A stretch of 64,000 nt of DNA from contig LSRY02000016.1 of assembly GCA_001643675.2 (NCBI GenBank), positions 1,116,001-1,180,000 on the forward strand. The letters are read 5' to 3'. Each line of letters opens with the position of its first letter. The first letter of the stretch is position 1. The notes beneath the pieces were generated by a model, which searched no databases, was not told the origin of the DNA, and saw only the letters and a list, made by a program, of their open reading frames with translations. This document shows, piece after piece, positions 3,001 through 42,491 of this stretch. Both the position numbers and the translations under genes were made by a program. Source of the stretch: Monocercomonoides exilis PA203 (lineage: Eukaryota > Protista > Preaxostyla).

Positions 3001-3676
3001 AGTCAGCGTTTCGTGTGTTGACTTCTGAAAGCGTAAAGTTTCAAGGTCTCACAATCAGCAATGTTCAATGCCTGAGCTCAGTGATAGAGTGTGGTATTAG
3101 CCAGAGTGTTAGTATTTCCAAATTGAAAGCAGAAAATACAACTCTGCAAAATGGTTGTGTGATTTCTTCGAAAGAGAGCTCTTCTTTGCTTTTTTCATTG
3201 TCGTTATCATCATTTGCGAACATCAGCCGATCATCATCTGGACCAAGCGTTATTTTCACGTCTCACGCAAAGTCTGCCTCTGAAATGTTCAACTGTTCAT
3301 TTTGCGAATGCGCATCAGCATCTGCGAAAGGGAGTCAAGTGGCAATGGTCTCTGCCGATGAGATGATGGTCGATCAGTGCAAGTTTGAAGGGAATCTTGC
3401 TGGTGGTTCAGAGGAAATGAATGTTGCTGAAGAGGGCATCTGCGAATGGAACGGCTCTGTTGTTGATTTCTCTGATTGTGTCACTGAGATAAGAGACACA
3501 ACAGTTTGCGACTCCTCGAAAGGCGGGTTGACAGCGAGTGGCGGTGCTGTGACGATTGAAGCATGCAATTTCAACAACAATAATCCATCTATTTTGCACT
3601 ATCCATCGGTAAGACGGAACATCATTTGCTCAGATTTTGGGGTTGTAAATGTGATGAGTGTGAAAGGAGGAGATGG
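1..3676 (+). repeat. Near-identical duplicated ectodomain block, copy 1 (copy 2 at 37513-41188)
   Basis: Constant offset of 37512 with no net indel; the same antisense ORFs recur in both copies. Identity ends after ...GTGAAAGGAGGAGATGG. Confidence 0.97.
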
Positions 3677-5462
3677 GCTGCTGCCAAACACATCATTATG
3701 GATCTTGAATAATGAATGCACGATGAAAGGGATTGCTGGAGAGAGGCCTTCTCCTTTGTTCATCCCCACAATAGAATCAGCAAAGATAGATAAGAAAGGA
3801 GACGAAGTTAGATTGTATGTGAAAGGCACATTGTTGCTTCCTTGCAACGTGGGTTTGAAGTTGAGTCTGAGGAATGGAGACGAAGAGCGTGTGGAAAAAT
3901 ATGATTTTGATGAATTTGTGAACGAGAGTGTGATAGCTGCAGATATTTCAAGCTCAACTATTGGAGAAGAAGAAAATGCAGAAGCATCTGTTTCTCTTCT
4001 TTTCGGTAATGAGAAACACAAATGCGAAACGCAACATTTTATTCTGAAGAACAGGAGTGTAGCCCAAACAAGTGGAGATGAAAAGATTGTCGAAGGTGGA
4101 AAGAAAGAAAAATCATTTTGGCCAATTATTGTGATTGTGTGTGTTGTATTTGTTGTGCTTCTGCTTGTAATTGTTGTTATTCTGGCTGTTCGGTGGAAGA
4201 AAGCAAAGAACGAAGCAGAAGATCTGAGAGAGATTGTGAATGACAACATCAGAAAGGATCCAAAGGCGTTTGAGATGGTGACGATGGAGATGTCACCTGA
4301 GGAGCAGTGGATGAGAGCAGAGAGAGAGGCCGAGAAAAAGAATGAAGAGAGGATCAAGAAGAGAATATATGATACGAATATGCAACACTCTGAATCATCA
4401 GAGCATCTTCTGTCCGAGAGTGACTCCACCGAATACATTTTGGGGAGAGATTCAGACAAGATTCCAGAATGGGCACTGGAGAAAGATGAGGAAGAAGAGG
4501 AAGATACAAGAAAGAGAACACCTTCACCTTCCATCTCTTCCACATCCACAACTGATTCAGATTCAACATTTGTTCGGGGAGAGGATCTGTGTCCCACCAC
4601 CTCATCAATGTCGAACTTGGTGGATGCAATGGCCTGCTCATCCCCTCATGAGAAGCTGATTGTGGATCTGAGAGATTCGCTGTTCATGCTGCTTCATGGA
4701 AGGAACGAGAAGAAAGAAATGGCGATTGGGAGTTTGAAGGAGAGGAAGCAGACAGCTGCACAGATCCTGTTCTGGGTGGCCAATCTTGCGCTCCACTCCT
4801 TTGACGAAATGGAAAATGAGCTTTCCTCTTTGGCCAATCTCAGTCCCCACATCGTGCTGTTCTCAGAACACATGGTCATCTGCATTGCCCTCCACTCCGA
4901 CTGCTCGTCAGACTCTGACACTTCCTCCATCTCTTCAACCTCTACCATTGCCACATCTTCCTCTGATGTTTCTGTGAAGAGCGAGAGATTCACAAAATCA
5001 CCTCCTCCTTCATCTGCCTTTGAGGATGAGGATGACAACAGAAAAGAGTGCATGAGGTGGAAGGCGCCAGAGCTGCTGATGAGCAAGAAGATGAGAGCAA
5101 CAAAGGAGTCGGTTGCCTTCTCGATTGGGATGATGTTGTGGGAGTGCCTTACGCTCCAGATCCCATTTGGGGAGTATCCAGCAGAGGTGGCAGGGCAGAA
5201 GATTGTGAATGGAGAACGACCTATCATGGGAATTACCGAAAAGAACCCATTTTCTGGCTGCATTCTGTCGTGCCTGGACAGCAATGCCCCGGCAAGGCCA
5301 ACACTTGTCGGCCTCAAGCGCGAGTTCATCCAGCACTTTCCTGCAGGCGCAGCTGTGCTCACGATGTCTGATGCAATTGGCTACGCTTATTCGAGCAGCA
5401 GCGGCAGTCGGTGCAAGGCTTCTGGGGCAGAGTCCGAAGGGAGCGACTCTGGAAGTGTTTAA
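1..5462 (+). CDS. Giant type-I membrane protein, 5'-truncated by the window edge: Cys/Gly-rich beta-helix-like ectodomain modules, one TM helix, cytoplasmic TKL/tyrosine-kinase-like pseudokinase C-lobe
   Basis: 1819-aa open frame running off the window start. Repeated CG-x4-(P/A)C and GGG/G-x-D-x-F motifs. TM helix FWPIIVIVCVVFVVLLLVIVVILAV followed by RWKK. C-terminal kinase subdomain VIII-XI motifs (MRWKAPE, FSIGMMLWECLTLQIPFG, ERP, CL..RP) without HRD or DFG. Confidence 0.85.
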   Translation, partial: LKDVSFPGCDAREGKEIFVNAHDLSGVIDRNSIRFDVDLNNFSKLSGFERSTLNETFAIPLVVYLWNNFSASGFVGGGSSSHDFSMCGYEVFPCTTIAKAASVHFEGKKKDVTVLEPFVFGDELGFDSEEWSIRAKENEMKCGVADLTEGAQSGLMENTVTTSVTGIVFSISQSLTYHESVFCCRSEKLTLSKCGMEGDVEAISAVLVKAVGGVVEVIEFGSESVAKWGFSFFIVEGNSESVPSMNMTNSNFGEISFVDGCVVACHNGNIEEISGCTFSSITRSKGSGGCISITNENDNDGRDHKVEINDCTFEGCAVAGEEEECGGGAFFFEASPKTNLVANECTFYGCTAPYEGEVVGYGGGIMLKILREEEVNGWFVIYSPVFSPNKPNNAKYGKDLFISSPSLASSVKNETLPFVRDRLEMLTEDSLRGYDGGNRECAIPLIYFWKSIGSSVYVSREGNNVVVCGLEEYPCGSVDYALNRASNLSLEGMVIQGICDVKREIRLRSMKMEGTNDESDKIKFVQAIEGNADVVVECNGVTEFEKVEISIPSSFDNPAKIFIWTGSDSIKASLVCCSIHAYSNAGNNLSFVLILAAKGIVQIESTKITELGSMHEIMSISVDCKVLMKNAAFEDISLNGGSVFALAETRISGGGSNAADEGWNAILEQCAFLNVKHSSSGNPSLLCCGEQNVVKLKMNNSTIRDCGSTSSNEGGSVFFGLSEGGLLEINHTNVTECFCSNIGRGGGMFLKSQSVSQKPLPFVLSNITFRGNVALKGRDVFVQCTDLDSQISESQFLINFGEPFVKELAIWGCTADNYEDEEDLLGRVYVFRSEFIFVSSIVGNSSDSKNCGEMKSACSSLNVGVSHIIPSDYSQLFIWNETTLTGSCSAQKVTIKSMESNRNAEIKVSEVELVGEEVVRTSESVRFERVSLVFDGMCNIACSCLIRQLNGFLFLGSVSFLAERGSLWNSQNNLDFSLLTVEDGLLEGSECSICSLQLAKSAFRVLTSESVKFQGLTISNVQCLSSVIECGISQSVSISKLKAENTTLQNGCVISSKESSSLLFSLSLSSFANISRSSSGPSVIFTSHAKSASEMFNCSFCECASASAKGSQVAMVSADEMMVDQCKFEGNLAGGSEEMNVAEEGICEWNGSVVDFSDCVTEIRDTTVCDSSKGGLTASGGAVTIEACNFNNNNPSILHYPSVRRNIICSDFGVVNVMSVKGGDGLLPNTSLWILNNECTMKGIAGERPSPLFIPTIESAKIDKKGDEVRLYVKGTLLLPCNVGLKLSLRNGDEERVEKYDFDEFVNESVIAADISSSTIGEEENAEASVSLLFGNEKHKCETQHFILKNRSVAQTSGDEKIVEGGKKEKSFWPIIVIVCVVFVVLLLVIVVILAVRWKKAKNEAEDLREIVNDNIRKDPKAFEMVTMEMSPEEQWMRAEREAEKKNEERIKKRIYDTNMQHSESSEHLLSESDSTEYILGRDSDKIPEWALEKDEEEEEDTRKRTPSPSISSTSTTDSDSTFVRGEDLCPTTSSMSNLVDAMACSSPHEKLIVDLRDSLFMLLHGRNEKKEMAIGSLKERKQTAAQILFWVANLALHSFDEMENELSSLANLSPHIVLFSEHMVICIALHSDCSSDSDTSSISSTSTIATSSSDVSVKSERFTKSPPPSSAFEDEDDNRKECMRWKAPELLMSKKMRATKESVAFSIGMMLWECLTLQIPFGEYPAEVAGQKIVNGERPIMGITEKNPFSGCILSCLDSNAPARPTLVGLKREFIQHFPAGAAVLTMSDAIGYAYSSSSGSRCKASGAESEGSDSGSV

Positions 5463-7175
5463 TAAAAATTGCATTTCGGCAAAAGGATTGCAAAGTGCAA
5501 ATGGAATCTGGGGCATTTATCAGGAACGGCAATGGAATTTTCATTTGCAATATGTATATATACTCCATTAACAGGGGTGTGAGTAGTTGTGTTGCTGCTT
5601 TTGTTGGGTGTGACAAGAGGCGTTTTGCACCATTTTCAAAGCAAAAATGGAACTTTTCTTTTTTTCATGTTTATTTGTTCGTTTTCTGTTTATGATTCTT
5701 ATGGCTTGAAAGCCCGCACCAGCAAAAGCATGGAACATTTCTCTGTGGCGTTATAAATAGAATATGCGCTGCTCTCTGAGAAATTTTTTAAGAATAAAGT
5801 ATTATTTTCAAAGATATTGAAAATTCATCAAATTTCAATCAAACTCTTTTTGTTTTGCAAGAATATGAAAAGCAGTGCTTTAAAAGCCTTCATCGCAGGA
5901 TATTTCCTTTTCGAGCAAATATTATTATTTGTCATTATCAAAGCACATGTTCAATTTTCAATTCAGAGAAGCTCGGATACGATGGCGTCGCTTGCAATCA
6001 AGATCACAAATAAAATCATTTCTTTTGGTTGATGAAATGTCGTTTTATTTTCTACGCTTTTCTCGTTGGTTGTCATCGTATAAAAATCGTAAGGTAATCA
6101 ATAATCATCTTAGAATGGGAATTATTTAATTTTACAAATATATTTTTAAAATGAAATCAATAAATTGTAGAAATCGATAGAATAAGATAATGTCATAAAA
6201 ACTGATAAACAAAATATCAAAAACAGATTCTTTTTATTTTTATTTCTTTAAAAGGTGATTTTTATTTTATTTTCTTGAAAAAGAGAATTTGAAATCATTG
6301 ACATCAAAATTTTTTCCAAAAATTGAGAAGTGGTGAAAGTGTTCAAATTTGACGCATGCTATAATTTAATTGTTTTAAACTGTCAGTTTATTCGTCGAAC
6401 GTTATGGACTGCATTGAATCCGATGAAAAATATTTTCTTGAGAAACAAATGAGATATTCAATTTTAATTTGAAAAAGGAGAATATTATTTGGCAAAAGGG
6501 GATTATACGGCCAGTAATGATTTTTTTCTTGAAAATATCTAAAACTGTATTGAAACCGAGCTTGACGTACTCGTTAGATAAGGTCAGTTGTTAAATTATT
6601 TTTAAAAAATTTATTTATCTTCCAACATTATCAATCTTTCAGAGATAATAATCTTCGATCAAGCCCATCATTTAATTTTGTCATGTTTTCTTTTTTTTTT
6701 TTTTTTTTTTTTTTTTCAATTAACTATTTTTTACAACAGAACTCTATGAATTAGGGTTAACCCGAAAAGAAATTTCATTTTTTCTTCATTTATAAAGACA
6801 TTAGGGCTTCAATACGAAAATTAATTTTTTATCATTATTCAAAAATTGAAAAAATTAAAAATTTCTTTCTTTGAATAATTGATGATAAAAATAGACTTTA
6901 TCTTCATTGAACTGATGATTTTCTGGAAGGAATATGAAAAAGAAATCGTTATGATATGAATTTTTCACTGGTCGTATCATACCCATTTGCCTATTATTTA
7001 TGTCAAGGACCACACACAAAAAAAAAAAATAATTCAAATTCGAAAATTAATATCTTTATTTCGAAAAAAAACTTTTTTAACTGAACTTTTTTTTCTTGAT
7101 GACTGATTTCGAAAAATAAAAAAAAATTTTGAAATTCAATAAGAAACAAACAAGTCAAGATTTCACACTGAAAAA

Positions 7176-7206
<31 letters not shown>

Positions 7207-7552
7207 AATATTGTTATTTTGAAAAAGAACAAAGTTTGGAGATCAACTCAAAGATGAATTTCACAATGAAATTTATTTACTGCTTCACTTTTATCTGAAA
7301 CATATGTTTCGGCGATAATTGAAATGCATTGAACATTTCAGTATGTATTAACTTACTAATGATTTGAAACTTCAACTGTTTATTCACCGAAAAAAATATT
7401 TGATTTGAAGCGTGATTGCCCACAATATAAAATACTAATTTTTTATTTGATTTCATCAGAAATACATCAACCTTATATTTGAAAAATGAAATTCTCTCAT
7501 TTTTGGATAAACTTGAAAATAAATAAATGAATAAGAGCGATTATTTTTGATA

Positions 7553-7586
7553 TGGGGGAAAATACGGACTTTCAAGCTTTTTTTTT
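7553..7586 (-). repeat. Truncated terminus of MITE family A
   Basis: TA|TGGGGGAAAATACGGACTTTCAAGCTTTTT is the reverse complement of the family A 3' end. Confidence 0.7.
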
Positions 7587-7608
7587 ATTTTATTTTTATT
7601 TTTTTATT

Positions 7609-7878
7609 TGGGGCTAAATATTTCACTTCAGGCATTTTCATTGAAAAGTTATGCACTTTTCATTGACTTTTTGAGATAAAAAAACACAATAAAATTGGGT
7701 CCATTTTTGACATTCATAAAATGTTTCAATTCCTCATGTTTTGATTTCAATGATGCCTGTTTGTAGAGATGAAAATCATATTTGTAATGAAATCTGAGAA
7801 AGCGAAAATAAAGTTTTGAGTGAAGCAATTTTTTAATGCCTAGTGCAAAAAAAGATTGAAAGTCCGAATTTTCCTCCA
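7609..7878 (+). mobile_element. MITE family A copy (~270 bp)
   Basis: Starts TGGGGCTAAATATTTCACTTCAGGCATTTTCATTGAAAA and ends AAAGATTGAAAGTCCGAATTTTCCTCCA. Homologous to copies at 11580, 29207, 44654 and 46146. Confidence 0.85.
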
Positions 7879-7999
7879 ACTGTGAAAAAATAACATGTGA
7901 ATAAATTCATTTATTTCGATAACGTGAACAACAGTTAGTTAATACAAAAATTTTAATTATAAGAATAATAATAATAACTGATTATTTCGAAGTTTCATT

Positions 8000-8024
8000 G
8001 ATGTCCTTCCAGTTTCATTATGTC
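8000..8024. repeat. Orphan Merlin-type TIR
   Basis: GATGTCCTTCCAGTTTCATTATGTC matches the right TIR (15018-15042) of the Merlin element and the reverse complement of its left TIR. Confidence 0.6.
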
Positions 8025-8965
8025 TGAAAAATAAAAAAATAACAATAAATATTCAAATCTGGATTATCGAAAATATTACCGAATGTTGTTATTTGCGTTG
8101 TACTCACATCCTGTTTTGGTTGAATCTTATTTATTTGGAAACTGAAAAGATTCAGCAAAACCCGATGAAATACAGACTGTTTGGAAAAACACTTGCTATT
8201 TCAATGTAGTTTTTTCTAAATGATAATTCTGAAGAATGATTCTTTTTTTTTAACTTTTTGTGTTAGTTTTTTTGATTTTGTTGTTTATGTTGAAGAACAA
8301 TTTGATAAAACAATTTATCATTTCCAGAAAACTTTTTTTGTCAAATAGTCTGTTGAAAAATTCATTTTTTCTGAAAGCGCATCAAAAAATAAGAATTCCA
8401 ATTATGAGGGTGTTAAAATGAATAAATAAATATTTTCTTTTTCTAATGAATAAATTTTTTTTTCAAATAAGCGTTCAATACAAATGTTTAAGCTTTCCAC
8501 TTCTTTTTTTCAGTGTTGAGATGAGCTATCAAATCGAATTATGAAACCGAAACAAAAAAATAATGAACATAATAGATTTTATTCATTTGGTGTTTTTTTT
8601 AAAAGAAGAAGAATCTTCAATGTGTGAAACATGTTATGAAATATAAGAAATGTTATCTTTTTCTTAAAAGAAATTAGACATCTGCGACATGACAAAAGAA
8701 AATTAAAACAATGACAAAATGACTGAAAAGACATTTACGATTTGTCAAAAATGGTTATTTAAAACGATTTCACAATTCTGTATTGCAATAATAATTGATT
8801 TGAAAATTAACGTATAACAATTCTTATAATCTTAAAAAAAATCAAATTTTTAATTATAATAATCAAGTTCCTTATGTATATTTTTTTGTCCAGGAAATCT
8901 CAGTTGAAGAATATTTTTGTCACAATTTGTCATAAACCGTCACTAACAAAAGAGTGAAAGAAATT

Positions 8966-9223
8966 TGGGTGATTAATTTTGATATCATATTTTTCCATTC
9001 AAAGAATCCCGTTCGATAATATTTCTTGAATATCAACAAAAGAATGCTGTAAAGCGAAAAGGCTTAGAAAAAAATATCATTTTCTTTATTTGAGCTTTAA
9101 CATTTGCTTTGATTACAGTTGTGATAATTCAACAATTTTAATACAAATCCTTTTCCCAATGACAAACAATGTTTGAAAAATCGACACCCCGAAAAAAGTT
9201 ATGATATAAAAAATAATTATACA
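8966..9223 (+). mobile_element. MITE family B copy (~255 bp)
   Basis: TGGGTGATTAATTTT...GACACCCCGAAAAAA...AAAAATAATTATACA|TA. Homologous to 63447-63700 and, inverted, to 33135-33393. Confidence 0.75.
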
Positions 9224-9684
9224 TAAATTTCTTTTTCGATCATCAATTCTTTTCCAAAGTTTTTAATGAAGCTTTCTAAAGATTTTGATATCGTTTGGAT
9301 TATTTTGTTTCAATTTTATAAAATTTATAAATCCTTTTTTTGTGATGGACGAGGCTCCAAGTAATTTATCAGGTCACAGAGGTTTTAAAGAAATGTTTTT
9401 TGTCTGATTTTCATAACACAATATTTTAGTGATTGGCTAATTGTTTATATAATTACACATTCGCTTGAAATCAGATTTTATAATTATTTTTGAAAATGAA
9501 AAAAGTCTTTTTTTGTTATTATATGAACGTCAATACAGGTGTTCACAGGTTTTGTTAATTGATAATACTTTTTGTTTTATAAAAACAAAGAAAAATAAAA
9601 ATTTGATGAATATTTTGTTTATTCTATCAAGTTTTTTTTTGAAATGCTCCATGAAATATGAATGAAAAAAACACATTAACATAT

Positions 9685-10950
9685 CTATTGTTCACCAAGA
9701 ATTGTTTTTTGTGGAAGTCCAAAATAAACTGGCATTCTGTCAATGTTCATTATTCCCCATTCACCTCCCTTTGTTTGTCTTGTTTTTCTTGTGCATGAAA
9801 GCGGCAATGATTTGTTGTCCAATTTCACAATTTCGATCACTTTTTGGAAGCTTTCTTCGAAAATCTGAGCTGTTGAAGGAGTTTTATGAAAATCATTCAC
9901 AAGTCTTCTTTCTTTAAATGTAAAAAGAATATTTATCGATGAAGAAACTTGCAATAATACTTTCATTCCAACCCACAAAAGTTGTTGCACGCTGTCGTGT
10001 GTTGAACCCGACATAACCTGTTGGATTTGAAGCTTGCAAAGCGAAAAAATTAATAAATCCTTTGACTGCAACAAGTGTGTTGTATTCGGAGGGAAAACCA
10101 AAAGCAAAATATTTTCATTAGCAAGACGAGTCAATACATTATCCAATAGGTAGATTCTGCAGCCATCAAGAATCAGCACTGCCTGTGCGTGTTTATCTAG
10201 TAAAATCATTCTTTTCATGTTGACATGAGGAATGAAAACTTTCTCAATCCAGTTTTCAAACAACTCCTTTGTGAAATATGACGAATTTCCGATTTCCACA
10301 CAACCATGAATTCCGGCTTGATAGCCTAGAGACCGAAGGGATCTTGCGTTAAACGGTTATTGCACCAGAAAACAAGGAGGAACAAAAGTTCCATCAAGTG
10401 AAATGCAGTGGAGCAATGATTTTCTTTTTTCTCCTCTCTCAACAGGCGTGTGATCCATTTCACGATTTTCATTTGTTCCCACGATCAGATTTATCTTCCT
10501 TGAATCTTCATGGGAATGATAACCTGAGTCATTAGCACAGAAAATCATGGATGAATATTTTCCACCAACATATTAAGAAAAATGATTTTCTCATGAAATA
10601 ATGCTTTGTACAAATATTATCATTCATTTTTCGTTTCTCACGCTTGAATGGACGATCATTAATTCCTCGCTATGCCTTTTTTTTGAAAGAAGATTGAAAA
10701 TTGTTAGAAAGCTATTGATGACAAGCTTTCGCAACAACGGCTCTTAGCGTTTTTGGTGTGATTTGCTTTCTTTTATCTCTCAATTTTTTTTAGTATTTCC
10801 ATGACTCGTTTTTCTTGCTTTCGAGTCATCAACATATTCTTTTTCTCAATAACCTTTTTCCTTTTGTATCCTGTTCGACTCTGGCAGACAAGGCTCGGTG
10901 TGCAGTTGAGTACCATTGCAATTCGCACCCATGAAGAAATTTAAACTTTC
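9685..10950 (-). pseudogene. pogo/Tigger-like DDE_1 transposase, fragmented
   Basis: Fragments CANDSG, CISLDGTFVPP, FENWIEKVFIPH, VLILDG and FPPNTTHLLQSKD are split across frames. The upstream boundary is approximate. Confidence 0.8.
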
Positions 10951-11579
10951 GTCATTTTTCAGGCGTTGAAGATGGAACGAATAAAAGATTCTTTCATTTT
11001 TGAAGTGTTTCGAGATAAGAAGGATGAAATGAAGTGAAAGTCATATTTTAAAAAAGTGTCCTATCAAAACTGTTTCAAATGAAGAAACACTTAAAGTTAA
11101 ATAATACAAACGGCATTTCTAATTTAAAGATTGTCAAATATATTTAACTGAAACAGCCATAATAATTAATGAATTGCTGTTGTTGTTAATATTTAAAATA
11201 TAACATGAATGGTGAGTGACTGTGAATAAAACATTCTGTTTATCATTTCGGAATCACATTTTTTTTTCAATTTTTATTGAAATTGCTATTAATTAAATTT
11301 TTTCTTTAACGAAAGAATGACTTCGATGATAGTCAGCCATTTTTTCAATGAAAGAAACAAAAATGACTTTTATAATATGGATTAAACTCAGACTTTTGAG
11401 CTGTGAAGCAAAAGGCACACAAACAATGCAATATTTCTAACATTATTTAACAAACTCTGATAATATTATATGGTACATATTTAATCTTGACCTCAAAAAT
11501 TAATCTCAACCTTTTTTTTTTGAAACTTTCTGATGCTTTTTTCGAGCTTGGTTAAGGTGTGAAACTAAAAATAAATAGA

Positions 11580-11849
11580 TGGGACAAAATATATAACTAC
11601 AAGAATTTTCATCGAAAAATTATGCACTGTTCATTGACTTTTTGTGATCAAAATATTTGAAAAAAACAGGATTATTTTTTGAAATACATGTGAGGTCGCA
11701 AAACATAATGTTATTATATCAATGATGTTTGCTTACAGTAATGATAATCAAATTTATTTTGAAATCTGGTTAAGTTTAAAAATGTTATTAGAAAAACATT
11801 TTTTTCATGCTTTGTGCATAAAAAGCTTGAAAGTCCGTATTTTCCCGCA
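11580..11849 (+). mobile_element. MITE family A copy
   Basis: Shares GAAAAATTATGCAC, CATGTGAGGTC, CAATGATGTTTG and the end AAAAGCTTGAAAGTCCGTATTTTCCC with the other copies. Confidence 0.85.
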
Positions 11850-17996: not shown

Positions 17997-19401
17997 ATGC
18001 GTTTAAATATTTTAACTACATTTACAATTATGTTTTTTGTGCTTTTATCACATGCCGGAGAAGATTTGTACAAAGTTCTTGGCATTGATAAGTCTGCTTC
18101 AAAGGAAGACATTAAGCGAGCATACAAACAAATGTCCTTGAAGTATCATCCAGATAAAGTCAAGGATACTGACAAGGAGACTGCAGAACGAAGATTTGCT
18201 GATATTGCAAATGCTTATGAAATTCTTTCTGATGACAAAAAACGAGAAATTTATGACAGTGGAGGAGAAGAAGCTTTAAGAAGAGAGGAACAAGGATTTG
18301 GCGGAGGAGGGGGAGGCTTTGATCCATTTGACATTTTTAATCAATTCCATGCAACATTCACAACCCATGACACATCACATCAACAACGTGCATCTCGTCC
18401 TCGTGGAGATCTCGTAGTTCCGTTACCACTCACATTGGAAGAAATATACAATGGAATTGAATTGGATGTTTGCATTATTTTTTCTACTGAAATTTAAACT
18501 TTTTTTCTCTTTTCGAATTTTCACAGGCAGTTGTTTCACACAGAATTATTTGCAAGAGCTGCAAAGGCATGAGAGTTTTTTTAAAAAAATCAATTTTATG
18601 CTGTCAATTTTTTTAAAATCATTCTTTGTGCAAATTCATTTCTTATTCATCTGAATTATGAAACTCTTTCTTTTTGCAGGAAAAGGTGCAGCCCCAAATG
18701 GAATGAAGCAATGTCATAAGTGCAAAGGTCGCGGAGTGATCACTGTGAAGCGAGCTATGCCGTTTGGGTACTTTACATCGCAGGAGACTTGCGATGTCTG
18801 CGGAGGGGCAGGGTCGATTATTTCTCAGAGATGCAGCGTTTGCAAAGGAGGGGGCACAGTTATGGGCACAGATAAGATTAAAGTGACTGTTGCGCCTGGC
18901 GTGAGCGATGGCTTTGAGATTGTGTATCCCGATCAAGGAGACCAGTTCGTTTCTGGAGACAGATCGAAGCTGGTGATGAGAGTGAGGGAAGAAGAGATGG
19001 AGAAGCAGACTTTGGTGTCGCAGGGCGTTTTGAAGGAAAGAGGCACTCCAAACCTCAAGCAGAAGCCTTTCTTTGTTCGGGACTCCAAAAACAACTTGCA
19101 TGTGAATTTCACCATCACTCTTCTGGAGTCGATTGTTGGAGAAGTGTTTCAAATTCCGCATTTTGGCAATCGCCTTGTGACGGTTGACAGGAAGAATAAG
19201 TTCACAAGAGAAGGAGAAGTGATCACTGTAAAAGGAGAAGGACTGCCAATAGGCAAAAAGAGCGGTTCGTGGATGAGCTCATGGAGCAAGAAAAACAACA
19301 GCAAGACACAAAAGGCTGATCTCATCATCACTTTCCATGTTCAATATCCAAAGCAACTCAGCGAAAAACAACGAAAAGCTATCATCGAAACACTGTCTTA
19401 A
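17997..19401 (+). CDS. ER-lumenal type-I DnaJ co-chaperone (Scj1/ERdj3-like); exons 17997-18467, 18527-18566, 18680-19401
   Basis: Signal peptide, J-domain with HPD, G/F region, four CxxCxGxG repeats after splicing, DnaJ C-terminal domain. Confidence 0.9.
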
Positions 19402-27333: not shown

Positions 27334-27421
27334 GGTTAATATCAAAACAAAATTAAAAAATTTAATTGTTTTGATCAGAAAAATAATCGCAAATTTTTTC
27401 TTTTGAATCGGAAATTATCAA

Positions 27422-29206: not shown

Positions 29207-29479
29207 TGGGGCGATGTATTTCACTTCAGGCATTTTCATTGAAAAATTATGCGCTTTTAATAGACTTTTGAAATAAATAAAAAACACAAAAAAAATGAGT
29301 TTATTTTTTGAAATGCATGTGAGGTCACAAAACATTTTGTTATTTCGTCAATGATGTTTGTGAACAAATATGAGAATCATATTTATTTTTAAATTTGTTT
29401 AAGTTAAATTAAGTTAAGAGTTGTTCTTTTTTTTTTGTGCTTTGTGCAAAAAAAGCTTGAAAGTCCGTTCTTTCCCCCA
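29207..29479 (+). mobile_element. MITE family A copy
   Basis: TGGGGCGATGTATTTCACTTCAGGCATTTTC...AAGCTTGAAAGTCCGTTCTTTCCCCCA|TA. Confidence 0.88.
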
Positions 29480-33134: not shown

Positions 33135-33393
33135 TGTGAAATAATTTTTTGAAATCACAACTTTTTTCAGTGTGTTTGTTTTTTAAAGATTGTTTGTCAC
33201 AGCAAAGAAATTTTGTCCATAACTTGTGTATTTATCACAATTGCTTTAATAACAAATATTTTTGCTCAAAAAAAAGACGATGATGACTTTTTTTAACGTT
33301 TTCATTTTTCAGTATTCTTTTGTTGATTCTAAAAAAATATTTGATAACAGAAATCCTTAAAAGGAAAAAAATGCTTGCAAAAATAATTATCAA
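33135..33393 (-). mobile_element. MITE family B copy, inverted and diverged
   Basis: Reverse complement shares TCAACAAAAGAAT, TTGTGATAA and TGACAAACAAT..GAAAAAAGTT.TGAT with 8966-9223. Confidence 0.65.
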
Positions 33394-33874: not shown

Positions 33875-36800
33875 ATGAGCGGACAATTACTTCTATTAAT
33901 TTGTTTGCTCATAGCTAAGGCACTTGCAATGCAAGATGTCTTTCGATGTAGTGAATCAAATAATAATTATGTTTGTTCTGGTATTGATTTTTTTTTGATG
34001 ACACATTTTCTCTGGTCAGCGAGAGCTGTTTCCCGTAGAGTTGAGTACAAACATACTTAATGCGACTGCGAATAATTTATATTCTTTTTCTAATGCGAGT
34101 GAGCAACATCCTACCTTTTACACGGAGATAATTACTTTTTTCTCAATTTCCAATTCTTCGATTGGATTGAGGTTGCTAACGATGGATCATCATGCTATTT
34201 CGTCTTTTCTACTTTCAACAACGTATTCTAAAACAAGAATTGAATCATGCTTCGTTTACCAAAATTCTTCATTTTTATTTATGTTACGAGAAAGTTCAAT
34301 TTTTATTTGGAACTTAAGCTTTCTTCAAAAAGCAGAAGCGTACCCCAACAGTATCGTAAATGCATCTGACGAATTTTCTTCTATTATTTTGAGTGATTCC
34401 GTTTTTTCAAGTTTGACCATGTCTTCGAAAGATAATTTCCTCGTTTCTGGAAAGAGCCAAAGCGAACAAATTGATAGCTGCCATTTTTATAACCTTTCTG
34501 TAAAGCATGACAAAAACAATTATCACCATATTGATCATTTTTCTTGTTTAAGTTTGATGGAGAATTGCCTTACGTCATCTTCTATGAACGTTCTTGAGGG
34601 AGGGATTGTAAGTGGAACAGAAGGATCTGGTTCATTTTTGTGCAACAATTGCACATTTGTTCAGAATGAAAGAATGGATAGGAGAGTGAGAAATACGGAT
34701 AGAAATACAACAACTCAAACACAGACTTATAAGAATGCTGAATGGATTGAATGCTCTGCTCCATGTGGAGGAGCGCTGTATGTGCATGACAATTCGAGTG
34801 CAACGCTGACTGTTGAGAATTCATCTTTTGTGAAATGCAACGCAACTGAAACCAGAGGTGGAGGTATTTTTGCCGAGAAAATTGCTGAATGCACAGTGAA
34901 ACATTCCGCATTTATTGAATGTTATTGTCTTTCATCAAGAGATCATGGAGGTGCTGGAGTGGAATTTGAAGGTTTAATTATTCAAATTCTTGTTGACAAT
35001 TGTTTGTTCAAAGATGGATGGACAGAAAATGATGGTGGAGGATTGGGGATTTGGAGCTCAAAAGCAACAAAAATGAAAGACTGTGTGTTGAACTGCTTGG
35101 TTCAGAATTGCAGTGCACATAACCGAGACAACTCGGGTGGAGGAGGTTTTAATTTTTGGAACACAGTTGACAAAATAGTTACGCACAACTGCCTTTTTAA
35201 AGGGTGCCATTCAGACTGCACCGGCGGTGCAGTATGTATTCAGACAAATGGATATAATGGAAATCTAATGTGGTTTTGTTTTTTTCACAACAACAGCTCA
35301 CCTCAAGGAATCGATATAAATGTTTATGATAACTCCATGAACTCCATAACCTCATGGTGCTTCTCAACAAGCATAAATGGAAATAGATATTTTGCAGGCA
35401 TAGACAGAAGCGATTGGCTTCCGAATACTGGTGGAAATTGCAGATTTGTCGCTTCGGTGGAGAATCAAGCAAATGCAAAAGACACATTCAGCTGTGGGTT
35501 GAATGAAAGTTGTGCATGTCTCACAATCAGCCATTGTCTGTCTCAAATGATTGTGGGGTTTGTGGAGGAAATCAAAGTGCTTTCTGGAACAGTTGTGGAA
35601 GGAAAAGGAGTTGATGTTGGGGAGAAAACGATCACTATGAATGGGGCTTCACCAGCTGGCTCGGCCATTGAAACAAAGTTTGAGGAAAGTGGACTGAGTC
35701 TGCTTTGTGTTAGAACAGGGAAATTGGTTGTGAGCGATCTGTCTGTGATTCACAATTCTTCATTTGAAAACAACCGACAATGCAGTTTGTTTGAGGTTCG
35801 GGGAAGTGGATTAATGGACGTGAAGCGAATGAATATATCGATGGATGCAGCTCATTCAGAAGAGAGGAGCATCCAGAACTCGCTTGTGAAATTGGAAGGG
35901 GGAGAGTTGAAAATGAAAGATGTGAGATGGATCCAAACATTCAGCGCCACAAGTGTGATGTCTCTGCCTCAAGGATCGCCTGTTTCATTGCCTCTGGATA
36001 ACTGCACTTTCAACAACATTGTGAGGACAACAGCTGGATCATCACTGATGAATGTGGGTGAAGGATCAAACTCAATAACTCTTGATGGATGCACTGTTGA
36101 TGGGTGTGGAAGTGAAGTCTCTGAGTTTGGAGGAGGAATGATGATTGAAATGGGGAATGTTGGTTCATTTACGATGAATGGAGGTGTTGTGAAGAACTGT
36201 TATGCCTCAGCCACTCAAGGGAGAGGAGGAGGGATTGGGCTGAAAGTGAAAGACACAAATGCAGAGTTTCTTATTTCATCAGCATTTGAAGGAAATCGAG
36301 CAAAATTTGGGAGTGATATTTTTGTTGATTCGATCGATCTGGAGTCAACAGCAACAAGTGGGAAAATTGCCTCGTTAACACCCTCATTTGATACAAAGAG
36401 CAAGATGCAAGGATTCAACAATGGAGATGAATCAGCTCCAATTCCGCTATGCGTTTATCTGATTCCTTTGCCAGAAGAGATTGTTGTGAGCAATGTTGAT
36501 GCTTCTGACAATTCTTATTGTGGATACGCTGAAATTCCGTGTCAGACTCTGAAGCATTGCTTGACAAGGCAAGAAGAAGAAAAGAAGATTGTTATCTTTG
36601 GGATGGCGGAAGTGAACAGTGAGCTGACATTTGACTCCTTGAAGCACACAATCCGAGGGAAAGATGGAAACAGTGGATGGAAGGTTATTGATGATTCTGA
36701 TGGAAGTGAAGGAAGCATGATAACTGTCAGTGCAAATGCGAACATGAGCTCACTCATTTTCTCTGTTCCTTCTGCTCTTCCAAATCACGAAATCTTCTTC

Positions 36801-39800
36801 AGTTCTTCGTCACAATCATTTTCGCTTGAAGATTGCACACTGACTTTTCAAGATTCCCAATCAGCGTTGTCTTTTGTGTTTTTGTCAGTGTCAGCAGGTG
36901 AGGCGTCTGTTTCATCGTTGAATGTCTTGTCTTTGGTTATTGGGAACTGTCCGTTGATTAATCTTGATGGAAACAATGCTGCTGGAACATTCACTTCCAT
37001 GAATGTTGAGGATATTAGCTCGACAGAAAATAGTGTTTTGTTTGGGGTGGCGAATGGAGCATCTTTGACGAGTGAAGATTCAACACTTTCAGTGAAAGCA
37101 TCTTCACAGGCAGATTTGCCATCAGGATCTATTCGAGTTATTTCCACAAATTCCGCCAAGTTGCTGAAGTTCACAAACAATACGATGAGCGGATTCAGAG
37201 GAATTGAAGGAAATGGAGGAGCTTTTGAATGCACACTTGGGAGAGAGTGCTCTCTGGAAATAGTTGGAGGGCTGATATCTGGGTGTGAGAGCAAAGGAGG
37301 AAATGGGGGAGGGTTGTGGGTTGAGATGAAAGAAGGATCGACATTCACTGTGGGAAACATGACAAATACTAACTCAGCAAGGACAATATTTTCGAGTGAT
37401 GAAAGTGGTTTGTTGCAACTGGTGAGCTGCAAGGCAACACAAACAGCAGGTGGGGAGCGTGGATATGGGGGAGGGATTTATGTTCATTTGGATGATGGAG
37501 CGAGTTCATTCATCTTGAAGGATGTTTCATTTCCTGGGTGCGATGCGAGAGAAGGGAAAGAGATCTTCGTTAATGCACATGATCTTTCAGGCGTGATTGA
37601 CAGAAACTCGATTAGATTTGATGTTGATTTGAATAACTTTTCAAAACTGAGTGGATTTGAGAGATCAACGCTGAATGAGACATTTGCCATTCCGCTGGTG
37701 GTGTATTTGTGGAACAACTTTTCTGCATCAGCATTTGTTGGAGGAGGATCGTCAAGCCATGATTTTTCGATGTGTGGATATGAAGCGTTTCCATGCACCA
37801 CGATTGCAAAGGCAGCATCTGTTCATTTTGAAGGGAAGAAAAAAGATGTTACTGTTCTTGAGCCATTTGTCTTTGGGGATGAATTGGGATTTGATTCGGA
37901 AGAATGGAGCATCAAAGCAAAGGAGAATGAAATGAAGTGCGGAGTTGCTGATCTGGCAGAAGGAGCACAAAGTGGATTGATGGAGAGCACAGTCACAACA
38001 TCTGTAACTGGTATTGTATTTTCGATATCTCAATCGCTGACATATCATGAAAGTGTGTTTTGTTGTCGTTCAGAGAAGCTCACACTGAGCAAGTGTGGGA
38101 TGGAAGGAGGCTCTGAGGCTATAACAACAGTGTTTGTGAAAGCTATTGGAGGGGTTGTGGAAGTGATTGAGTTTGGATCAGAAAGTGTTGCCAAATGGGG
38201 TTTTTCGTTTTTCATTGTTGAAGGAAATTCCGAAAGTGTGCCTTCGATGAATATGACGAACAGCAATTTTGGAGAAATCTCATTTGTTGATGGATGTGTT
38301 GTTGCGTGCCACAACGGAAATATCGAAGAGATATCTGGTTGCACATTTTCATCGATTACACGCTCGAAGGGAAGTGGAGGGTGCATCAGCATTACGAACG
38401 AGAACGATAATGATGGAAGAGATCACAAAGTGGAAATAAATGACTGCACATTCGAAGGATGTGCCGTTGATGGGGAGGAAGAAGAGTGCGGTGGAGGGGC
38501 ATTCTTTTTTGAAGCATCTCCAAAAACGAATCTTGTGGCAAATGAATGCACATTTGATGGTTGCACAGCACCATATGAAGGTGAAGTTGTTGGATATGGT
38601 GGAGGAATAATGCTGAAGATACTGAGAGAAGAAGAGGTTAATGGATGGTTTGTGATATCCTCACCTGTTTTTTCACCAAACAAGCCAAACAATGCGAAAT
38701 ATGGGAAGGATCTGTTCGTTTCGTCTCCATCGCTTGCCAGCAGCGTCAAGAACGAAACACTTCCATTTGTGAGAGATAGATTGGAGATGCTGACTGAAGA
38801 CTCTCTGAGAGGATATGACGGAGGAAACAGAGAGTGTGCAATCCCGCTGATCTATTTCTGGAAATCTATTGGATCGAGCGTCTATGTTTCACGAGAAGGA
38901 AACAACGTGGTTGTATGTGGATTAGAAGAATATCCGTGCGGATCCGTTGATTATGCGCTCAATAGGGCAAGCAACCTATCTCTTGAAGGGATGATAATAC
39001 AGGGGATTTGCGATGTGAAGAGGGAAATAAGGTTGCGCAGCATGAAAATGGAAGGAACAAATGACGAATCAGACAAAATCAAATTTGTTCAAGCGATTGA
39101 GGGAAATGCAGACGTTGTTGTTGAATGCAACGGAGTTACTGAATTTGAAAAAGTGGAGATTTCGATTCCATCATCCTTTGACAATCCAGCAAAAATTTTC
39201 ATCTGGACAGGTTCAGATTCAATCAAAGCGAGTCTTGTGTGCTGCTCAATCCATGCATATTCTAATGCTGGAAACAATTTATCCTTTGTTCTGATTTTGG
39301 CTGCAAAAGGAATTGTTCAGATAGAATCGACAAAGATCACAGAGCTGGGATCGATGCACGAGATAATGAGCATATCAGTTGATTGCAAAGTGTTGATGAA
39401 GAATGCAGCATTCGAAGATATTTCTTTGAATGGAGGAAGTGTTTTTGCTCTGGCCGAAACGCGGATATCTGGAGGTGGAAGCAATGCAGCCGACGAAGGA
39501 TGGAACACCATATTTGAGCAATGTGCATTCCTGAATGTGAAGCACAGTTCATCGGGAAATCCATCATTGCTTTGTTGTGGTGAGCAAAATGTTGTGAAAT
39601 TGAAAATGAATAATTCAACGATCCGTGATTGTGGATCAACAAGCTCGAATGAAGGGGGATCTGTATTCTTTGGACTCAGCGAAGGCGGGTTGTTGGAAAT
39701 CAACCACACAAATGTGACAGAGTGTTTCTGCTCGAATATTGGGAGAGGAGGAGGGATGTTTTTGAAATCACAAAGTGCCTCGCAGAAGGCATTGCCATTT

Positions 39801-42491
39801 GTGCTATCGAACATCACATTCCGAGGGAATGCTGCATTGAAGGGGAGAGATGTGTTTGTGAAGTGCACTGACCTTGACTCGCAGATAAGTGAATCACAGT
39901 TCCTAATAAATTTTGGGGAGCCATTTGTGAAGGAGCTGGCAATATGGGGATGCACAGCAGACAATTATGAGGATGAAGAGGATCTGTTGGGAAGGGTGTA
40001 TGTGTTCAGGAGCGAATTCATATTTGTGTCATCGATTGTGGGGAACAGCAGCGACAGCAAGAATTGTGGGGAAATGAAGAGCGCATGCTCATCGCTGAAT
40101 GTTGGGGTGAGCCACATCATCCCGTCTGATTATTCTCAGCTGTTTATCTGGAATGAAACAGCTTTAACAGGCTCGTGCTCTGCTCAAAAGGTGACGACCA
40201 AGTCAATGGAATCGAATAGGAATGCCGAGATAAAAGTGAGTGAGGTTGAGTTGGCAGGGGAGGAAGTTGTGAGAACTTCGGAATCTGTTCGATTTGAGAG
40301 AGTGTCACTTGTTTTTGATGGAATGTGTAACATTGCCTGCTCGTGCTTAATACGCCAATTGAATGGATTTCTCTTTTTGGGATCTGTTTCATTTCTGGCT
40401 GAGAGTGGATCACTTTGGAATTCACAGAACAATTTAGATTTTTCATTGTTAACTGTTGAGGATGGACTGCTCGAGGGAAGCGAGTGCAGCATATGCAGCT
40501 TGCAATTAGCAAAGTCAGCGTTTCGTGTGTTGACTTCTGAAAGCGTAAAGTTTCAGGATCTCACAATCAGCAATGTTCAATGCCTGAGCTCAGTGATAGA
40601 GTGCGGTATTAGCCAGAGTGTTAGCATTTCCAAATTGAAAGCAGAAAATACAACTCTGCAAAATGGTTGTATGATTTCTTCGAAAGAGAGTTCTTCTTTG
40701 CTTTTTTCATTGTCATTATCATCATTTGCGAACATCAGCCGATCATCATCTGGACCAAGCGTTATTTTCACGTCTCACGCAAAGTCTGCCTCTGAAATGT
40801 TCAACTGTTCATTTTGCGAATGCGCATCAGCATCTGCGAAAGGGAGTCAAGTGGCAATGGTCTCTGCCGATGAGATGATGGTCGATCAGTGCAAGTTTGA
40901 AGGGAATCTTGCTGGTGGTTCAGAGGAAATGAATGTTGCTGAAGAGGGCATCTGCGAATGGAACGGCTCTGTTGTTGATTTCTCTGATTGTGTCACTGAG
41001 ATAAGAGACACAACAGTTTGCGACTCCTCGAAAGGCGGGTTGACAGCGAGTGGCGGTGCTGTGACGATTGAAGCATGCAATTTCAACAACAATAATCCAT
41101 CTATTTTGCACTATCCATCGGTAAGACGGAACATCATTTGCTCAGATTTTGGGGTTGTAAATGTGATGAGTGTGAAAGGAGGAGATGGATTGGAAAGAAA
41201 TACTTCACTTTGGATATTGAATGATGGATGCAGCTTTGAAGGGATTGTTTCAGAGAGGGATTCATCATTCTTTATTCCTGTTCTGGAGAGTGTGGAAGCA
41301 AAAGAAGAGACAGATAGAATGAAGTTGACTTTCAAAGGGATGCTTCTTGTTCCATGCAATCTATCATTCGCAGTTGTTAAGAAGAATGGAGAAGAGAAAG
41401 AGATTGAAAAACATGATTTTGAAACAAATGGGTTTTTGACGGAAAGAGAAGTTGAAGGGAGCGTGGGAAAAGATCTCGTCAGCAACTGTGGAGAAGAGGT
41501 GGAAGTGAGTGTATACATTTTGTTTGGAGATAAAAATAGTCCATCATCCACTGATTCTATCATTCTGAAGAATAGAAGTGTTAAAGTGAAGGATGACGAA
41601 AGAATATCTGAGGAAGATAACAAAATCGAATGGAGTTTGATTGCATTCATTGGTTGTGTGATAGTTGTTGCGATTCTGTTGTTTGTAATAATAATAATTG
41701 TTGTGCTTAAGAAGAAACAAAATAAAGGTAAAAGGAAAGTTGGAGATGGAGATATAGAAGGAACAAAGAATATTGTGAGAGGGGAATGGAGAAAAGAAGA
41801 TGTTGTGCAAAGAGAGGAGGAGGAAGAAGATAAGGTGCAAGTAGTATTGGATGGAGAAACGGGAAATGAGATGGGAATGTCAACAGAGAAAGTCGAGGAG
41901 CTTGATGTACATGAGAACAAAGAAGTTATTGAGAATACATTTGATTGTGAGGAAGTGATCGGAGTGATGCCAGTGAATTATGTTGAAATGCAAACAGTTG
42001 CTTTGCTTCAAAGCTGTGGAGAGGATGGAAGCATGGAGAGTGCTGCTTGTGCGGGTGGAATAGAAGATCAGAATATGCGAAAAGGAGATGGAAAAGCGAA
42101 AAGGGGGAAGAGAAGGAAGGGGAAGAAACGAAGGCAAGTGGAAGAGATTGATGAAATTGGGGATGAGAGGGGTGGTTCGGAGATTGGATTGAATGAGTTG
42201 GGTGGAGCAGCTTCTGATGATGGAAGAAATGGAAGTCCAACAGAATATTATATTGGGATATGTTCAGCACCAAATAGCCATTTTTCGATGATTGGAGACG
42301 ATTCAGAAGATCAGGGGATGAAGAGAACAATGGAAGAAGAAAGAAAAGTGGTGAAAGAAGTCAGAGAAGAAGAAGGAGAAGTGATTAAACTCAAGAAAAG
42401 GAAGAAAAAGAAAAAGAAAAATCAGAAAAGGGAAGATAAATCGGAAATTGTTAAGGATGTTGCTGAAATGGGGTTGATTGATGCGGGATAA
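33875..42491 (+). CDS. Giant (~2855 aa) type-I surface protein with signal peptide, ~5 Cys/Gly beta-helix-like modules, TM helix and acidic/basic cytoplasmic tail; intron 33971-34019
   Basis: The MSGQLLLLICLLIAKALA signal exon splices in phase 0 (GTTTGT..CAG) onto the 2816-aa ORF. GGAL/GGGI and FxxN motifs. TM helix WSLIAFIGCVIVVAILLFVIIIIVVL followed by KKK. Confidence 0.87.
37513..41188 (+). repeat. Near-identical duplicated ectodomain block, copy 2
   Basis: Matches 1-3676. Confidence 0.97.

Follow-up and report, generated by a model that had tools for sequence, protein, structure and literature searches.

Two large genes on the forward strand of a 64,000-nucleotide stretch of the Monocercomonoides exilis PA203 genome (contig LSRY02000016.1, positions 1,116,001 to 1,180,000; hereafter, the window) encode membrane proteins that are almost identical along much of the ectodomain, up to the residues VMSVKGGDG, and then part into distantly homologous membrane-proximal domains and unrelated cytoplasmic tails. 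How nearly the same sequence came to stand before two such different continuations is the question raised by this locus. A first-pass annotation, made from the letters alone, answered it with a mix-and-match receptor system, in which the family recombines through a short conserved cassette just upstream of the membrane-proximal domain, so that one ectodomain can be coupled to different intracellular outputs. Following up that proposal in the whole genome, we conclude that the second of the two genes (copy 2) is very probably a mosaic produced by ectopic gene conversion, which was constrained by local homology and domain boundaries and involved no dedicated cassette system.

The shared tract has two sharp ends

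The two genes, copies 1 and 2, are composed as listed below. Negative positions denote the sequence upstream of the window start on the same contig (C10), of which 20 kb leftward was examined.

1 to 3677, + strand: part of the near-identical tract of copy 1 within the window, 98.2% identical to 37513–41189; the full tract spans window −1800 to 3677.
3 to 5462, + strand: C-terminal 1,819 codons of the copy 1 gene, from the list of open reading frames and the translation; the gene starts upstream of the window.
3651 to 3710, + strand: junction motif of copy 1 in translation, VMSVKGGDG, variable LLP, then NTSLWILN.
3678 to 4061, + strand: membrane-proximal beta-sandwich domain of copy 1, from alignment and model, ending in ILKNRSV (4041–4061).
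4116 to 4190, + strand: transmembrane segment of copy 1, from sequence analysis.
4191 to 5459, + strand: class K1 cytoplasmic tail of copy 1, a kinase C-lobe remnant (Pfam match at about 5028–5324; W-x-APE at 5055–5078).
33875 to 33990, + strand: candidate signal-peptide exon of copy 2 (MSGQLLLLICLLIAKALA...), in another frame than the main open frame, so that a short putative intron would be needed.
34041 to 42491, + strand: intact open frame of copy 2, 2,816 codons, from the same list and translation.
34041 to 35712, + strand: N-terminal tip of copy 2, not in copies 0 and 1 (for copy 0, see below); nearest family members 65–67% identical in amino acids.
35713 to 41189, + strand: part of copy 2 that was probably converted, matching copies 0 and 1 at 98% identity, with its ends at the GKLVVSDLSV codons (5') and after GGDG (3').
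41163 to 41222, + strand: junction motif of copy 2 in translation, VMSVKGGDG, variable LER, then NTSLWILN.
41190 to 41582, + strand: membrane-proximal domain of copy 2, from alignment, ending in ILKNRSV (41562–41582).
41631 to 41708, + strand: transmembrane segment of copy 2, from sequence analysis.
41709 to 42488, + strand: Glu/Lys-rich tail (class EK) of copy 2, 76% identical to the MONOS_3094 tail, with the conserved C-terminus ...VAEMGL[IL]DAG.

Compared in register, positions 1–3676 and 37513–41188 differ at 67 of 3,676 bases (98.2% identity), in agreement with the near-identity that had been noticed. The abrupt stop reported right after the codons for VMSVKGGDG (3651–3677 and 41163–41189) is likewise real: the final mismatch before the junction is at position 3203, 473 matching bases then follow, and mismatches are dense from 3677/41189 onward. 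A three-state hidden Markov model (HMM) applied to the global pairwise alignment changed its state at exactly the junction base, identity falling there from 98.2% to 52%. The distant homology described downstream is also retained, with NTSLWILN (3687/41199), ILKNRSV (4041/41562), and the transmembrane segment at equivalent places in both copies.

The window opens inside copy 1, and the shared block extends 1.8 kb to the left beyond the window start. In full, it is 5,548 bp long and 98.07% identical (blastn, gaps allowed; window −1800 to 3746 against 35713 to 41258), and it has a second sharp end at 35713, deep inside the open frame of copy 2, where GKLVVSDLSV is encoded. Each end is at a homologous, in-frame position of the recipient gene, and the flanking sequences are diverged, being 52–57% identical on the 3' side and, on the 5' side, either unalignable or 71–73% identical in short stretches. 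The N-terminal tips (~560–600 residues) differ among all three copies 0, 1, and 2. Since the N-terminal ~560 residues differ and the tract is internal with two ends, the locus does not present one ectodomain joined to two tails. Codon differences in the window part of the tract comprise 37 synonymous and 28 nonsynonymous changes, and the resulting ratio of nonsynonymous to synonymous rates (dN/dS), roughly 0.24, suggests that the genes are under constraint.

Copy 2 as the probable recipient of a conversion tract

Leftward of the window start (−11577 to −6032), the minus strand carries a third copy, termed copy 0, which is 98.2% identical to copy 2. When the comparison is confined to the final 1,526 nt of the tract, copies 0 and 1 are 99.5% identical to each other, copy 2 is 98.2–98.4% identical to either, and two further loci, L035 and L036, are 96.6–96.9% identical to copies 0, 1, and 2. 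Past the junction, copies 0 and 1 and L035/L036 stay 97–100% identical up to +383 nt; copy 2 does not. The tract of copy 2 thus nests in a clade in which the combination of this stalk (the repetitive part of the ectodomain) with this membrane-proximal domain is ancestral, which makes copy 2 the recipient and the clade the donor. Two signs by which gene conversion is recognized were accordingly found together, namely, a near-identical internal tract with two abrupt, in-frame ends between diverged flanks, and a tract that nests in the copy 0/1 clade while its flanks group elsewhere. Indeed, copy 2 is a three-way mosaic: its tip is nearest to proteins P0101/P0119/P0059 (65–67%), its tract to copy 0 (98%), and its cassette, that is, the conserved region around the junction, together with its tail, to MONOS_3094 (90% and 76%, respectively). 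Its membrane-proximal domain moreover contains patches up to 98–99% identical to locus L002 (C10:1500343), and both L002 and MONOS_3094, the nearest relatives of its cassette and tail, are on the same chromosome as copy 2.

We propose that the central 5.5 kb of copy 2, which encodes four stalk beta-helix modules, would have been overwritten from the copy 0/1 lineage, 37 kb away on the same chromosome, leaving in place the gene's own tip, membrane-proximal domain, transmembrane segment, and Glu/Lys tail. The tract would have terminated at points of sufficient local similarity between donor and recipient for the exchange to be resolved. The 3' point would be the invariant SLKGGDG codons, whose position in a flexible loop, with the final beta-helix turn on one side and the beta-sandwich on the other, would allow the chimera to fold. 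Throughout the family, paralogs would receive copies of long tracts and of very short patches from one another, the partners usually sharing a chromosome and often a palindrome, and stalks and tails would come to assort independently over time.

Another route to the same mosaic would be duplication and replacement, with a copy 0/1-type segment inserted or fused through two reciprocal crossovers or through a non-homologous (e.g., transposon-mediated) event. Transposon remnants do occur nearby (DDE_1 at 9688–10299, DIRS elements at 47–56 kb), and the family has many palindromes and segmental duplications. However, both borders of the tract are at homologous positions and keep the frame, neither shows a target site or element sequence, and the gradual patchiness in other pairs, together with patches of 9–20 nt, fits homologous repair. 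The housekeeping genes in the interval between the copies are intact as well, which excludes a single crossover and favours a non-crossover patch. We therefore regard duplication and replacement as very unlikely.

The joint between the copy 2 stalk and its EK tail might also be unreal, if reads were mis-joined within the 5.5 kb repeat. The assembly is Nanopore-based, its three copies are 98–99.5% identical, and 1-bp frame breaks in C runs suggest imperfect polishing; no contig, furthermore, bridges 41188 into the copy 2 continuation. A mis-join, however, could at most swap flanks, which would leave a mosaic in place, and the genome holds exactly three stalk copies at ≥99% and, on the 3' side, two ends of type K1 and one of type EK; as the link to K1 recurs in four loci (copy 0, copy 1, L035, and L036), the EK end is left for copy 2. 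Moreover, the assembler kept ~100 distinguishing differences between the copies apart, the 5' boundary of copy 2 (35607–35745) is bridged by contigs with 0 differences from the 2016 DNA run and from the 2024 RNA libraries, and such mosaic joints recur throughout the family. An assembly artefact thus appears extremely improbable.

One of the RNA-library contigs runs from 41188 into a copy 1-type continuation. Transcription of the tract genes is suggested by these contigs, although the RNA libraries may contain DNA. Contigs of the 2024 RNA libraries at 36378, 36533–36544, and 39494–39725 show sets of variants unseen in the DNA runs of the strain; these probably represent other expressed paralogs or a diverged culture line.

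Palindromes and the mosaic structure of copies 0 and 1

Copies 0 and 1 together form a head-to-head palindrome with arms of 10,178 bp (99.54% identity) and a spacer of 3,775 bp:

1 to 8117, no strand: window part of the right palindrome arm; the full arm spans window −2028 to 8117.
Window −15980 to −5804: left palindrome arm from self-comparison, carrying copy 0 on the minus strand.

Each arm includes a kinase-type tail and, 3' of it, 2.6 kb of flanking sequence, and the differing N-terminal tips fall in the spacer. The arms reach to the module-start motif FFCGFDETHPCETIG, which precedes the end of the copy 2 tract by 228 bp; the palindrome and the copy 2 tract stop at different points and arose in different events. 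Like copy 2, copies 0 and 1 are mosaics: they have the stalk and 125 residues of the membrane-proximal domain in common with L035/L036, and from ILKNRS on, their transmembrane segment and tail are 98% identical to L037–L039; in copy 1, the 98% identity to these other C10 genes begins about +377 nt past the junction, and the breakpoint towards L038/L039 was placed at +363 to +373 nt (ILKNRS).

A second, related palindrome is present at C10:1291263/1307071 (L035/L036), and the match lists of the family contain many further inverted pairs with identical scores. On contig C18, tail-to-tail palindromes ~4.8 kb apart were found for L043/L044, L048/L049, and L053/L054 (about 810, 1,030, and 1,183 kb, respectively). 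Their arms begin 245 nt before the junction, so that cassette and tail are common to each pair and the stalks are unrelated, which mirrors the situation of copies 0 and 1.

The frame of copy 1 is broken at window about −1135 by a 1-bp length difference in a C run (cccc versus ccc). There are three such frame-breaking 1-bp differences, all in short C runs, in copy 1 (L032:8866–8870) and, ~320 codons past the junction, in L033 and L035. Those of L033 and L035 are at different positions, and their partners are intact and otherwise 99.5–100% identical. Probably, these differences are unpolished Nanopore homopolymer errors in repeats, with real frameshifts as a less likely alternative.

Architecture of the family and its tails

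The genome searched was the Nanopore assembly of M. exilis PA203 (82.3 Mb, 101 contigs; PMC8767320). Each membrane-proximal domain query returned more than 1,400 candidate places (~1,400), the 150 genomic matches scored per query all having E < 1e-50 and lying mostly in open frames of 2,000–4,400 residues, and a stalk query returned about 1,590. In the protein database, all of the best 120 matches were MONOS_ proteins of M. exilis, many of them with PF07714. The signature of the family, found in both genes of the window, consists of C..SG.L.V.SLKGGDG followed by three residues and NTSLW, a domain ending in ILKN[RK]S, and a single transmembrane segment; SLKGGDG and NTSLW are essentially invariant in the 60 loci and 117 proteins sampled.

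The ectodomain is built of repeated modules of ~340–420 residues, each opening with C-G-x-x-x-x-C-x-[ST]; copy 2 has five such beta-helix module starts, at residues ~485, 827, 1245, 1626, and 2009. The last stalk module was modelled by AlphaFold as a long beta-solenoid (alignment of 63 sequences; predicted local distance difference test (pLDDT), 84). In Pfam searches, segments of the ectodomain matched no family even at E values up to 1, PF02415, PF13229, and PF07602 included, and neither the membrane-proximal domain nor the EK tail gave a match. In a second model, covering residues −150 to +140 around the junction (51 sequences, pLDDT 75), the solenoid ends at ~148, a low-confidence loop occupies 150–155, and a beta-sandwich spans 181–277. 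The low-confidence loop comes directly after GGDG, which would place the copy 1/copy 2 breakpoint in an inter-domain loop.

The tails of the 117 proteins form at least three classes: 89 proteins have tails of class K1 (copy 1 type), 19 of class K2, 6 of the Glu/Lys-rich kind (copy 2 type), and 3 of a further kind. The contrast between a pseudokinase tail in copy 1 and an unrelated Glu/Lys-rich tail in copy 2, drawn at first sight from the letters, was confirmed by Pfam, which matched the former only to the C-lobe of PF07714 (profile positions 160–257/258) and gave no match above the curated cut-off for the latter. More generally, K1 and K2 tails match only kinase profile positions ~156–257/258. 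A complete catalytic kinase domain (PF07714/PF00069) was looked for in these 108 tails and found in none: HRD-type and VAIK-like motifs occur in 0, a DFG-like motif in 3, and GxGxxG in 3, in contrast to 101 with W-x-APE (within K1, 3 of 89 match D[FLY]G or GxGxxG). Having only the C-lobe and lacking the catalytic motifs, the K1 and K2 tails are best regarded as pseudokinase remnants.

Stalk and tail lineages are decoupled

The first-pass annotation had called for trees of the sequences 5' and 3' of the motif to be compared. The comparison was made by distance correlation and parsimony, using two independent samples, one of 117 annotated proteins and the other of 51 genomic loci taken raw, free of gene models, and the relationships of stalks and tails proved incongruent. 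Thus, among the 117 proteins, stalk distances were uncorrelated with tail distances (r −0.07 to 0.11), versus correlations of 0.70–0.80 within the stalk (residues −600 to −100, counted from the junction) and 0.61–0.76 within the transmembrane segment and tail (+130 to +490); the decoupling was seen again in the 51 raw loci. Tail class required 19 parsimony changes on the stalk tree and 3 on the tail tree, against about 27 with shuffled labels in each case, and stalk clusters required 25 changes on the tail tree and 9 on the tree of the other stalk half, against about 38. The correlation near zero and the repeated label changes indicate that ectodomains and tails were reshuffled many times. Hence, what holds of the proposal that one ectodomain is coupled to different outputs is that a single stalk lineage stands on two unrelated tails in this window and that stalks and tails assort nearly independently throughout the family; but the ectodomain concerned is not the same one.

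A scan in 20-residue steps located the boundaries of this decoupling. The correlation with the stalk drops between −90 and −50 residues, around ...MCRW[ND]GS..., where the arms of the C18 palindromes start, and the correlation with the tail leaps from 0.18 to 0.54 at +110 to +130 residues, at ILKNRS just outside the membrane; KGGDG is the middle of the conserved cassette between these boundaries. In the raw-locus sample, the windows on the two sides of KGGDG (−50 to 0 and 0 to 60) remain correlated with each other (r 0.69). The claim of decoupling rests on stalk versus tail, both of which are variable blocks. Independence of the cassette from the stalk was considered and is not claimed, as the low correlations between the cassette and its flanks are possibly low-variance noise.

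Paralogs on the same contig resemble each other more than those on different contigs in the stalk (0.58 versus 0.38), the cassette (0.76 versus 0.61), and the tail (0.74 versus 0.44), which indicates that exchange and duplication are mostly local.

Positions of the exchange points

A breakpoint map was obtained from 60 junction-centred loci of 3.5 kb, in which 420 locus pairs sharing ≥40 25-mers were subjected to global pairwise alignment and the three-state HMM; the pairwise procedure was chosen since a multiple nucleotide alignment of the 60 loci was too gappy (6,674 columns for 3.5 kb). The ends of high-identity tracts fall in ~55 position clusters from −1,363 to +1,951 nt. Those next to sequence at most 72% identical, termed hard ends, which mark exchanges with a distant lineage, occur at 8–9 positions: −247/−245 and −232 nt, which are the arm starts of the C18 tail-to-tail palindromes; −1 nt, which is the copy 2 event; +363 to +373 nt (copies 0 and 1 versus L038/L039, at ILKNRS); +414 to +417 nt (L037); +446 nt (copy 2 versus L002); +906 nt; and +1,496 to +1,520 nt, inside the kinase remnant. 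Only the copy 2 end lies at KGGDG, and across the 420 pairs no single preferred switch point used by independent events was found. KGGDG is therefore not the point through which the family recombines, as had been supposed; the family-wide boundaries are 50–90 residues upstream of it and at +110 to +130 residues. The related expectation of breakpoints by the membrane-proximal domain holds insofar as exchange points do concentrate in the conserved region around that domain, but they are spread over ~55 clusters and not gathered at one short junction.

What, then, conserves the cassette? It is the most conserved part of the protein, with about 80% amino acid identity versus 45–60% elsewhere. At fourfold-degenerate sites, identity is 0.64–0.69 at the motif, 0.74 near ILKNRS, and 0.51–0.67 (mostly 0.52–0.62) in the stalk, and this analysis revealed no conserved nucleotide-level recombination sequence at the motif. 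Judged from the fourfold sites, the conservation of the cassette is mostly ascribable to selection on the protein. Tract ends gather in the region from −80 to +120 residues because it is the most conserved part of the protein: the cassette would offer the only stretches sufficiently alike in distant paralogs for homologous repair to start or end. We infer in this way a role of both homology and selection in placing the tract ends.

The three residues between KGGDG and NTSLW (window 3678–3686 and 41190–41198) take the forms xER in 42, xKD in 41, and xLP in 31 of the 117 proteins, and these are distributed randomly on the trees of either flank. Near-identical paralogs on contigs C18, C25, and C17 differ by patches of 9–20 nt; at loci L043–L054, L006–L028, and L013–L023, the sequences are identical for 75 nt on either side and different only in the 9–20 nt patch of the tripeptide. 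Random distribution and small patches fit frequent short-patch conversion among many paralogs. Cassette polymorphisms in general are strongly homoplastic, with ratios to shuffled labels of 0.6–1.06 and a median of 0.61 over windows from −300 to +115 residues. The tripeptide after GGDG was also considered as a unique hotspot and rejected, as homoplasy is similar in all 3-residue windows across the whole cassette. In the structural model, the tripeptide site is a low-confidence loop directly before an N-T-S sequon.

These results bear directly on the model of a dedicated short junction cassette (KGGDG..NTSLWIL) that recombines ectodomains and cytoplasmic modules as a combinatorial diversification system. 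Such a model agrees with the copy 1/copy 2 tract ending exactly after GGDG, the near invariance of SLKGGDG and NTSLW in the sample, three discrete tripeptide forms shuffled randomly relative to both flanks and constituting the only difference between some near-identical paralogs, and the family-wide independence of stalk and tail; a mild enrichment of transitions within 20 nt of the motif, quantified below, also favours it. Against it stand the second tract end inside the ectodomain, by which no whole ectodomain was swapped, the single hard breakpoint among 8–9 at the motif, the correlation of the two flanking windows with the tail-like jump only at +110 to +130 residues, the identity of no more than 0.64–0.69 at fourfold sites, and the extension of high homoplasy to the whole cassette beyond the tripeptide. 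We thus consider a dedicated cassette quite improbable. The further suggestion of a combinatorial receptor or antigen diversification system fares no better, as nothing indicates a programmed system over ordinary ectopic gene conversion.

A broader variant is that the juxtamembrane cassette as a whole (~−80 to +120 residues) is a selected recombination hinge, keeping hundreds of receptor genes near linkage equilibrium and continuously generating new pairings of ectodomains with three or more signalling tails and new xER/xKD/xLP states, maybe on a clonal time scale. If true, this mitochondrion-less commensal would have a combinatorial repertoire of receptors encoded in its germline; we consider it unlikely.

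Several points weigh against gene conversion without a dedicated system. Within 20 nt of KGGDG, 4 of the ~55 clusters are found, versus ~0.65 expected under a uniform distribution (40 of ~3,400 nt); three of these four are soft transitions (identity from 0.99 to 0.83–0.88) in one C18 gene group and may reflect the variable tripeptide rather than tract ends. The direction of transfer is deduced from tree nesting, and non-reciprocity from the intact intervening genes. The 3' junction of copy 2 has no bridging contig: the Logan contigs stop at 41188, an expected branch of the assembly graph, because the preceding 473 bp are identical between the copies. Finally, the sample consists of 60 loci and 120 proteins out of more than 1,400 candidate places. 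Collectively, ectopic gene conversion nevertheless remains by far the most probable origin of copy 2.

Other features of the locus

Between copy 1 and copy 2, the window contains the following genes:

18658 to 19398: DnaJ-type chaperone.
20066 to 24257: Utp21/WDR36 homologue, divided, probably by an intron, into two or more open frames.
25879 to 27345: AAA-type ATPase.

Remnants of mobile elements are found both between the receptor genes and downstream of copy 2:

9688 to 10299, − strand: DDE_1 transposase fragment, between the receptor genes.
47762 to 48967, − strand: tyrosine-recombinase open reading frame, downstream of copy 2.
53091 to 54452, + strand: reverse transcriptase, downstream of copy 2.

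An AT-rich repeat family (100–150 nt, 69–77% identity) is represented at 7609–7708, 11580–11679, 29207–29306, and 44652–44751, and also at 7688–7833, 11660–11805, and 29289–29434; a copy occurs ~2.15 kb downstream of the stop codon in both copy 1 and copy 2.

Comparison with known systems

The largest gene family reported for M. exilis is 'tyrosine kinase-like' (TKL), with 320 TKL among 332 predicted kinases and an overlap with 'unclassified repeats' according to the parts of the reports that treat it (PMC6759080, PMC8767320). The TKL genes of Karnkowska et al. 2019 (PMC6759080) and Treitli et al. 2021 (PMC8767320) are the same genes as those described here. The passages of those papers devoted to TKL deal with kinases only and make no mention of an ectodomain, dead kinases, alternative tails, palindromes, or mosaicism; and a literature search on the architecture or evolution of the family gave no description, none of the 15 best-ranked of 4,981 papers being on M. 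exilis. Compared with the 332 kinases given in those passages, more than 1,400 candidate places were found here, and tails without a kinase remnant also exist. If our result on the tails holds, this largest family would be largely catalytically dead. From a rough product of candidate places and gene length, it probably covers around a tenth of the M. exilis genome. For annotators, we note that kinase counts in this genome consist mostly of pseudokinases and that, within these repeats, a frameshift from a 1-bp homopolymer difference may be an error of the assembly.

In fold, the best matches of the stalk model in the PDB were PL6 alginate lyases, GH136, polygalacturonase, and phage tailspikes, all weak (E 4e-3 or worse, template-modelling (TM) scores 0.2–0.4), and Atlas leads with scores <0.9 were Beta_helix, Chlam_PMP, and DUF1565 clusters. 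Judged from the model, the likeness to Chlamydia Pmp, DUF1565, and pectin-lyase proteins is one of fold only. Likewise, the junction model resembles the ectodomains of the insulin and IGF1 receptors and the fibronectin type III (FnIII) domains of cytokine receptors in Foldseek comparisons, in having a solenoid, a loop, and a beta-sandwich (TM scores about 0.2–0.3, ~10% identity), a predicted likeness that is an architectural analogy and not kinship.

The ectodomains of the transmembrane kinases (TMKs) of Entamoeba histolytica are Cys-rich CXXC repeats. As in M. exilis, the TMKs constitute a large family in a gut protist, each member with an ectodomain, a single transmembrane segment, and a kinase-type tail, and many being truncated or inactive (PMC2880585, PMC2211552). 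In contrast to the TMKs, the ectodomain in M. exilis is composed of parallel beta-helix modules without a Pfam match, and every K1 and K2 tail examined lacks the HRD and VAIK catalytic motifs.

The VSG genes of trypanosomes, the var genes of Plasmodium, and the VSP genes of Giardia are other mosaic surface families shaped by ectopic gene conversion. The M. exilis family resembles in its genomic pattern the surface families of Trypanosoma cruzi (PMC1965468, PMC7563717) and the Gal/GalNAc lectin genes of Entamoeba (PMC3125142), which are also large membrane-protein families in which identity between paralogs is a patchwork, tracts end in conserved stretches, and genes occur in local clusters and inverted pairs. 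The family described here is known from sequence and gives no sign of expression sites, mutually exclusive expression, or telomeric location; it differs from these mosaic surface families further in that its host is a commensal, its members are beta-helix receptors of 2,000–4,000 residues with signalling-type tails, and the cytoplasmic module is reshuffled as well. It is well known that homology-guided ectopic gene conversion yields mosaics in other multigene families, so that the mechanism itself is not new; what is new is a mosaic, conversion-shaped family of surface proteins with an architecture absent from the literature found. To the known systems it adds giant beta-helix receptors with dead-kinase or non-kinase tails, arranged in palindromes and with stalk and tail lineages decoupled by gene conversion, and thereby a concrete view of the way in which a receptor repertoire of great size and diversity is built up in a commensal protist.

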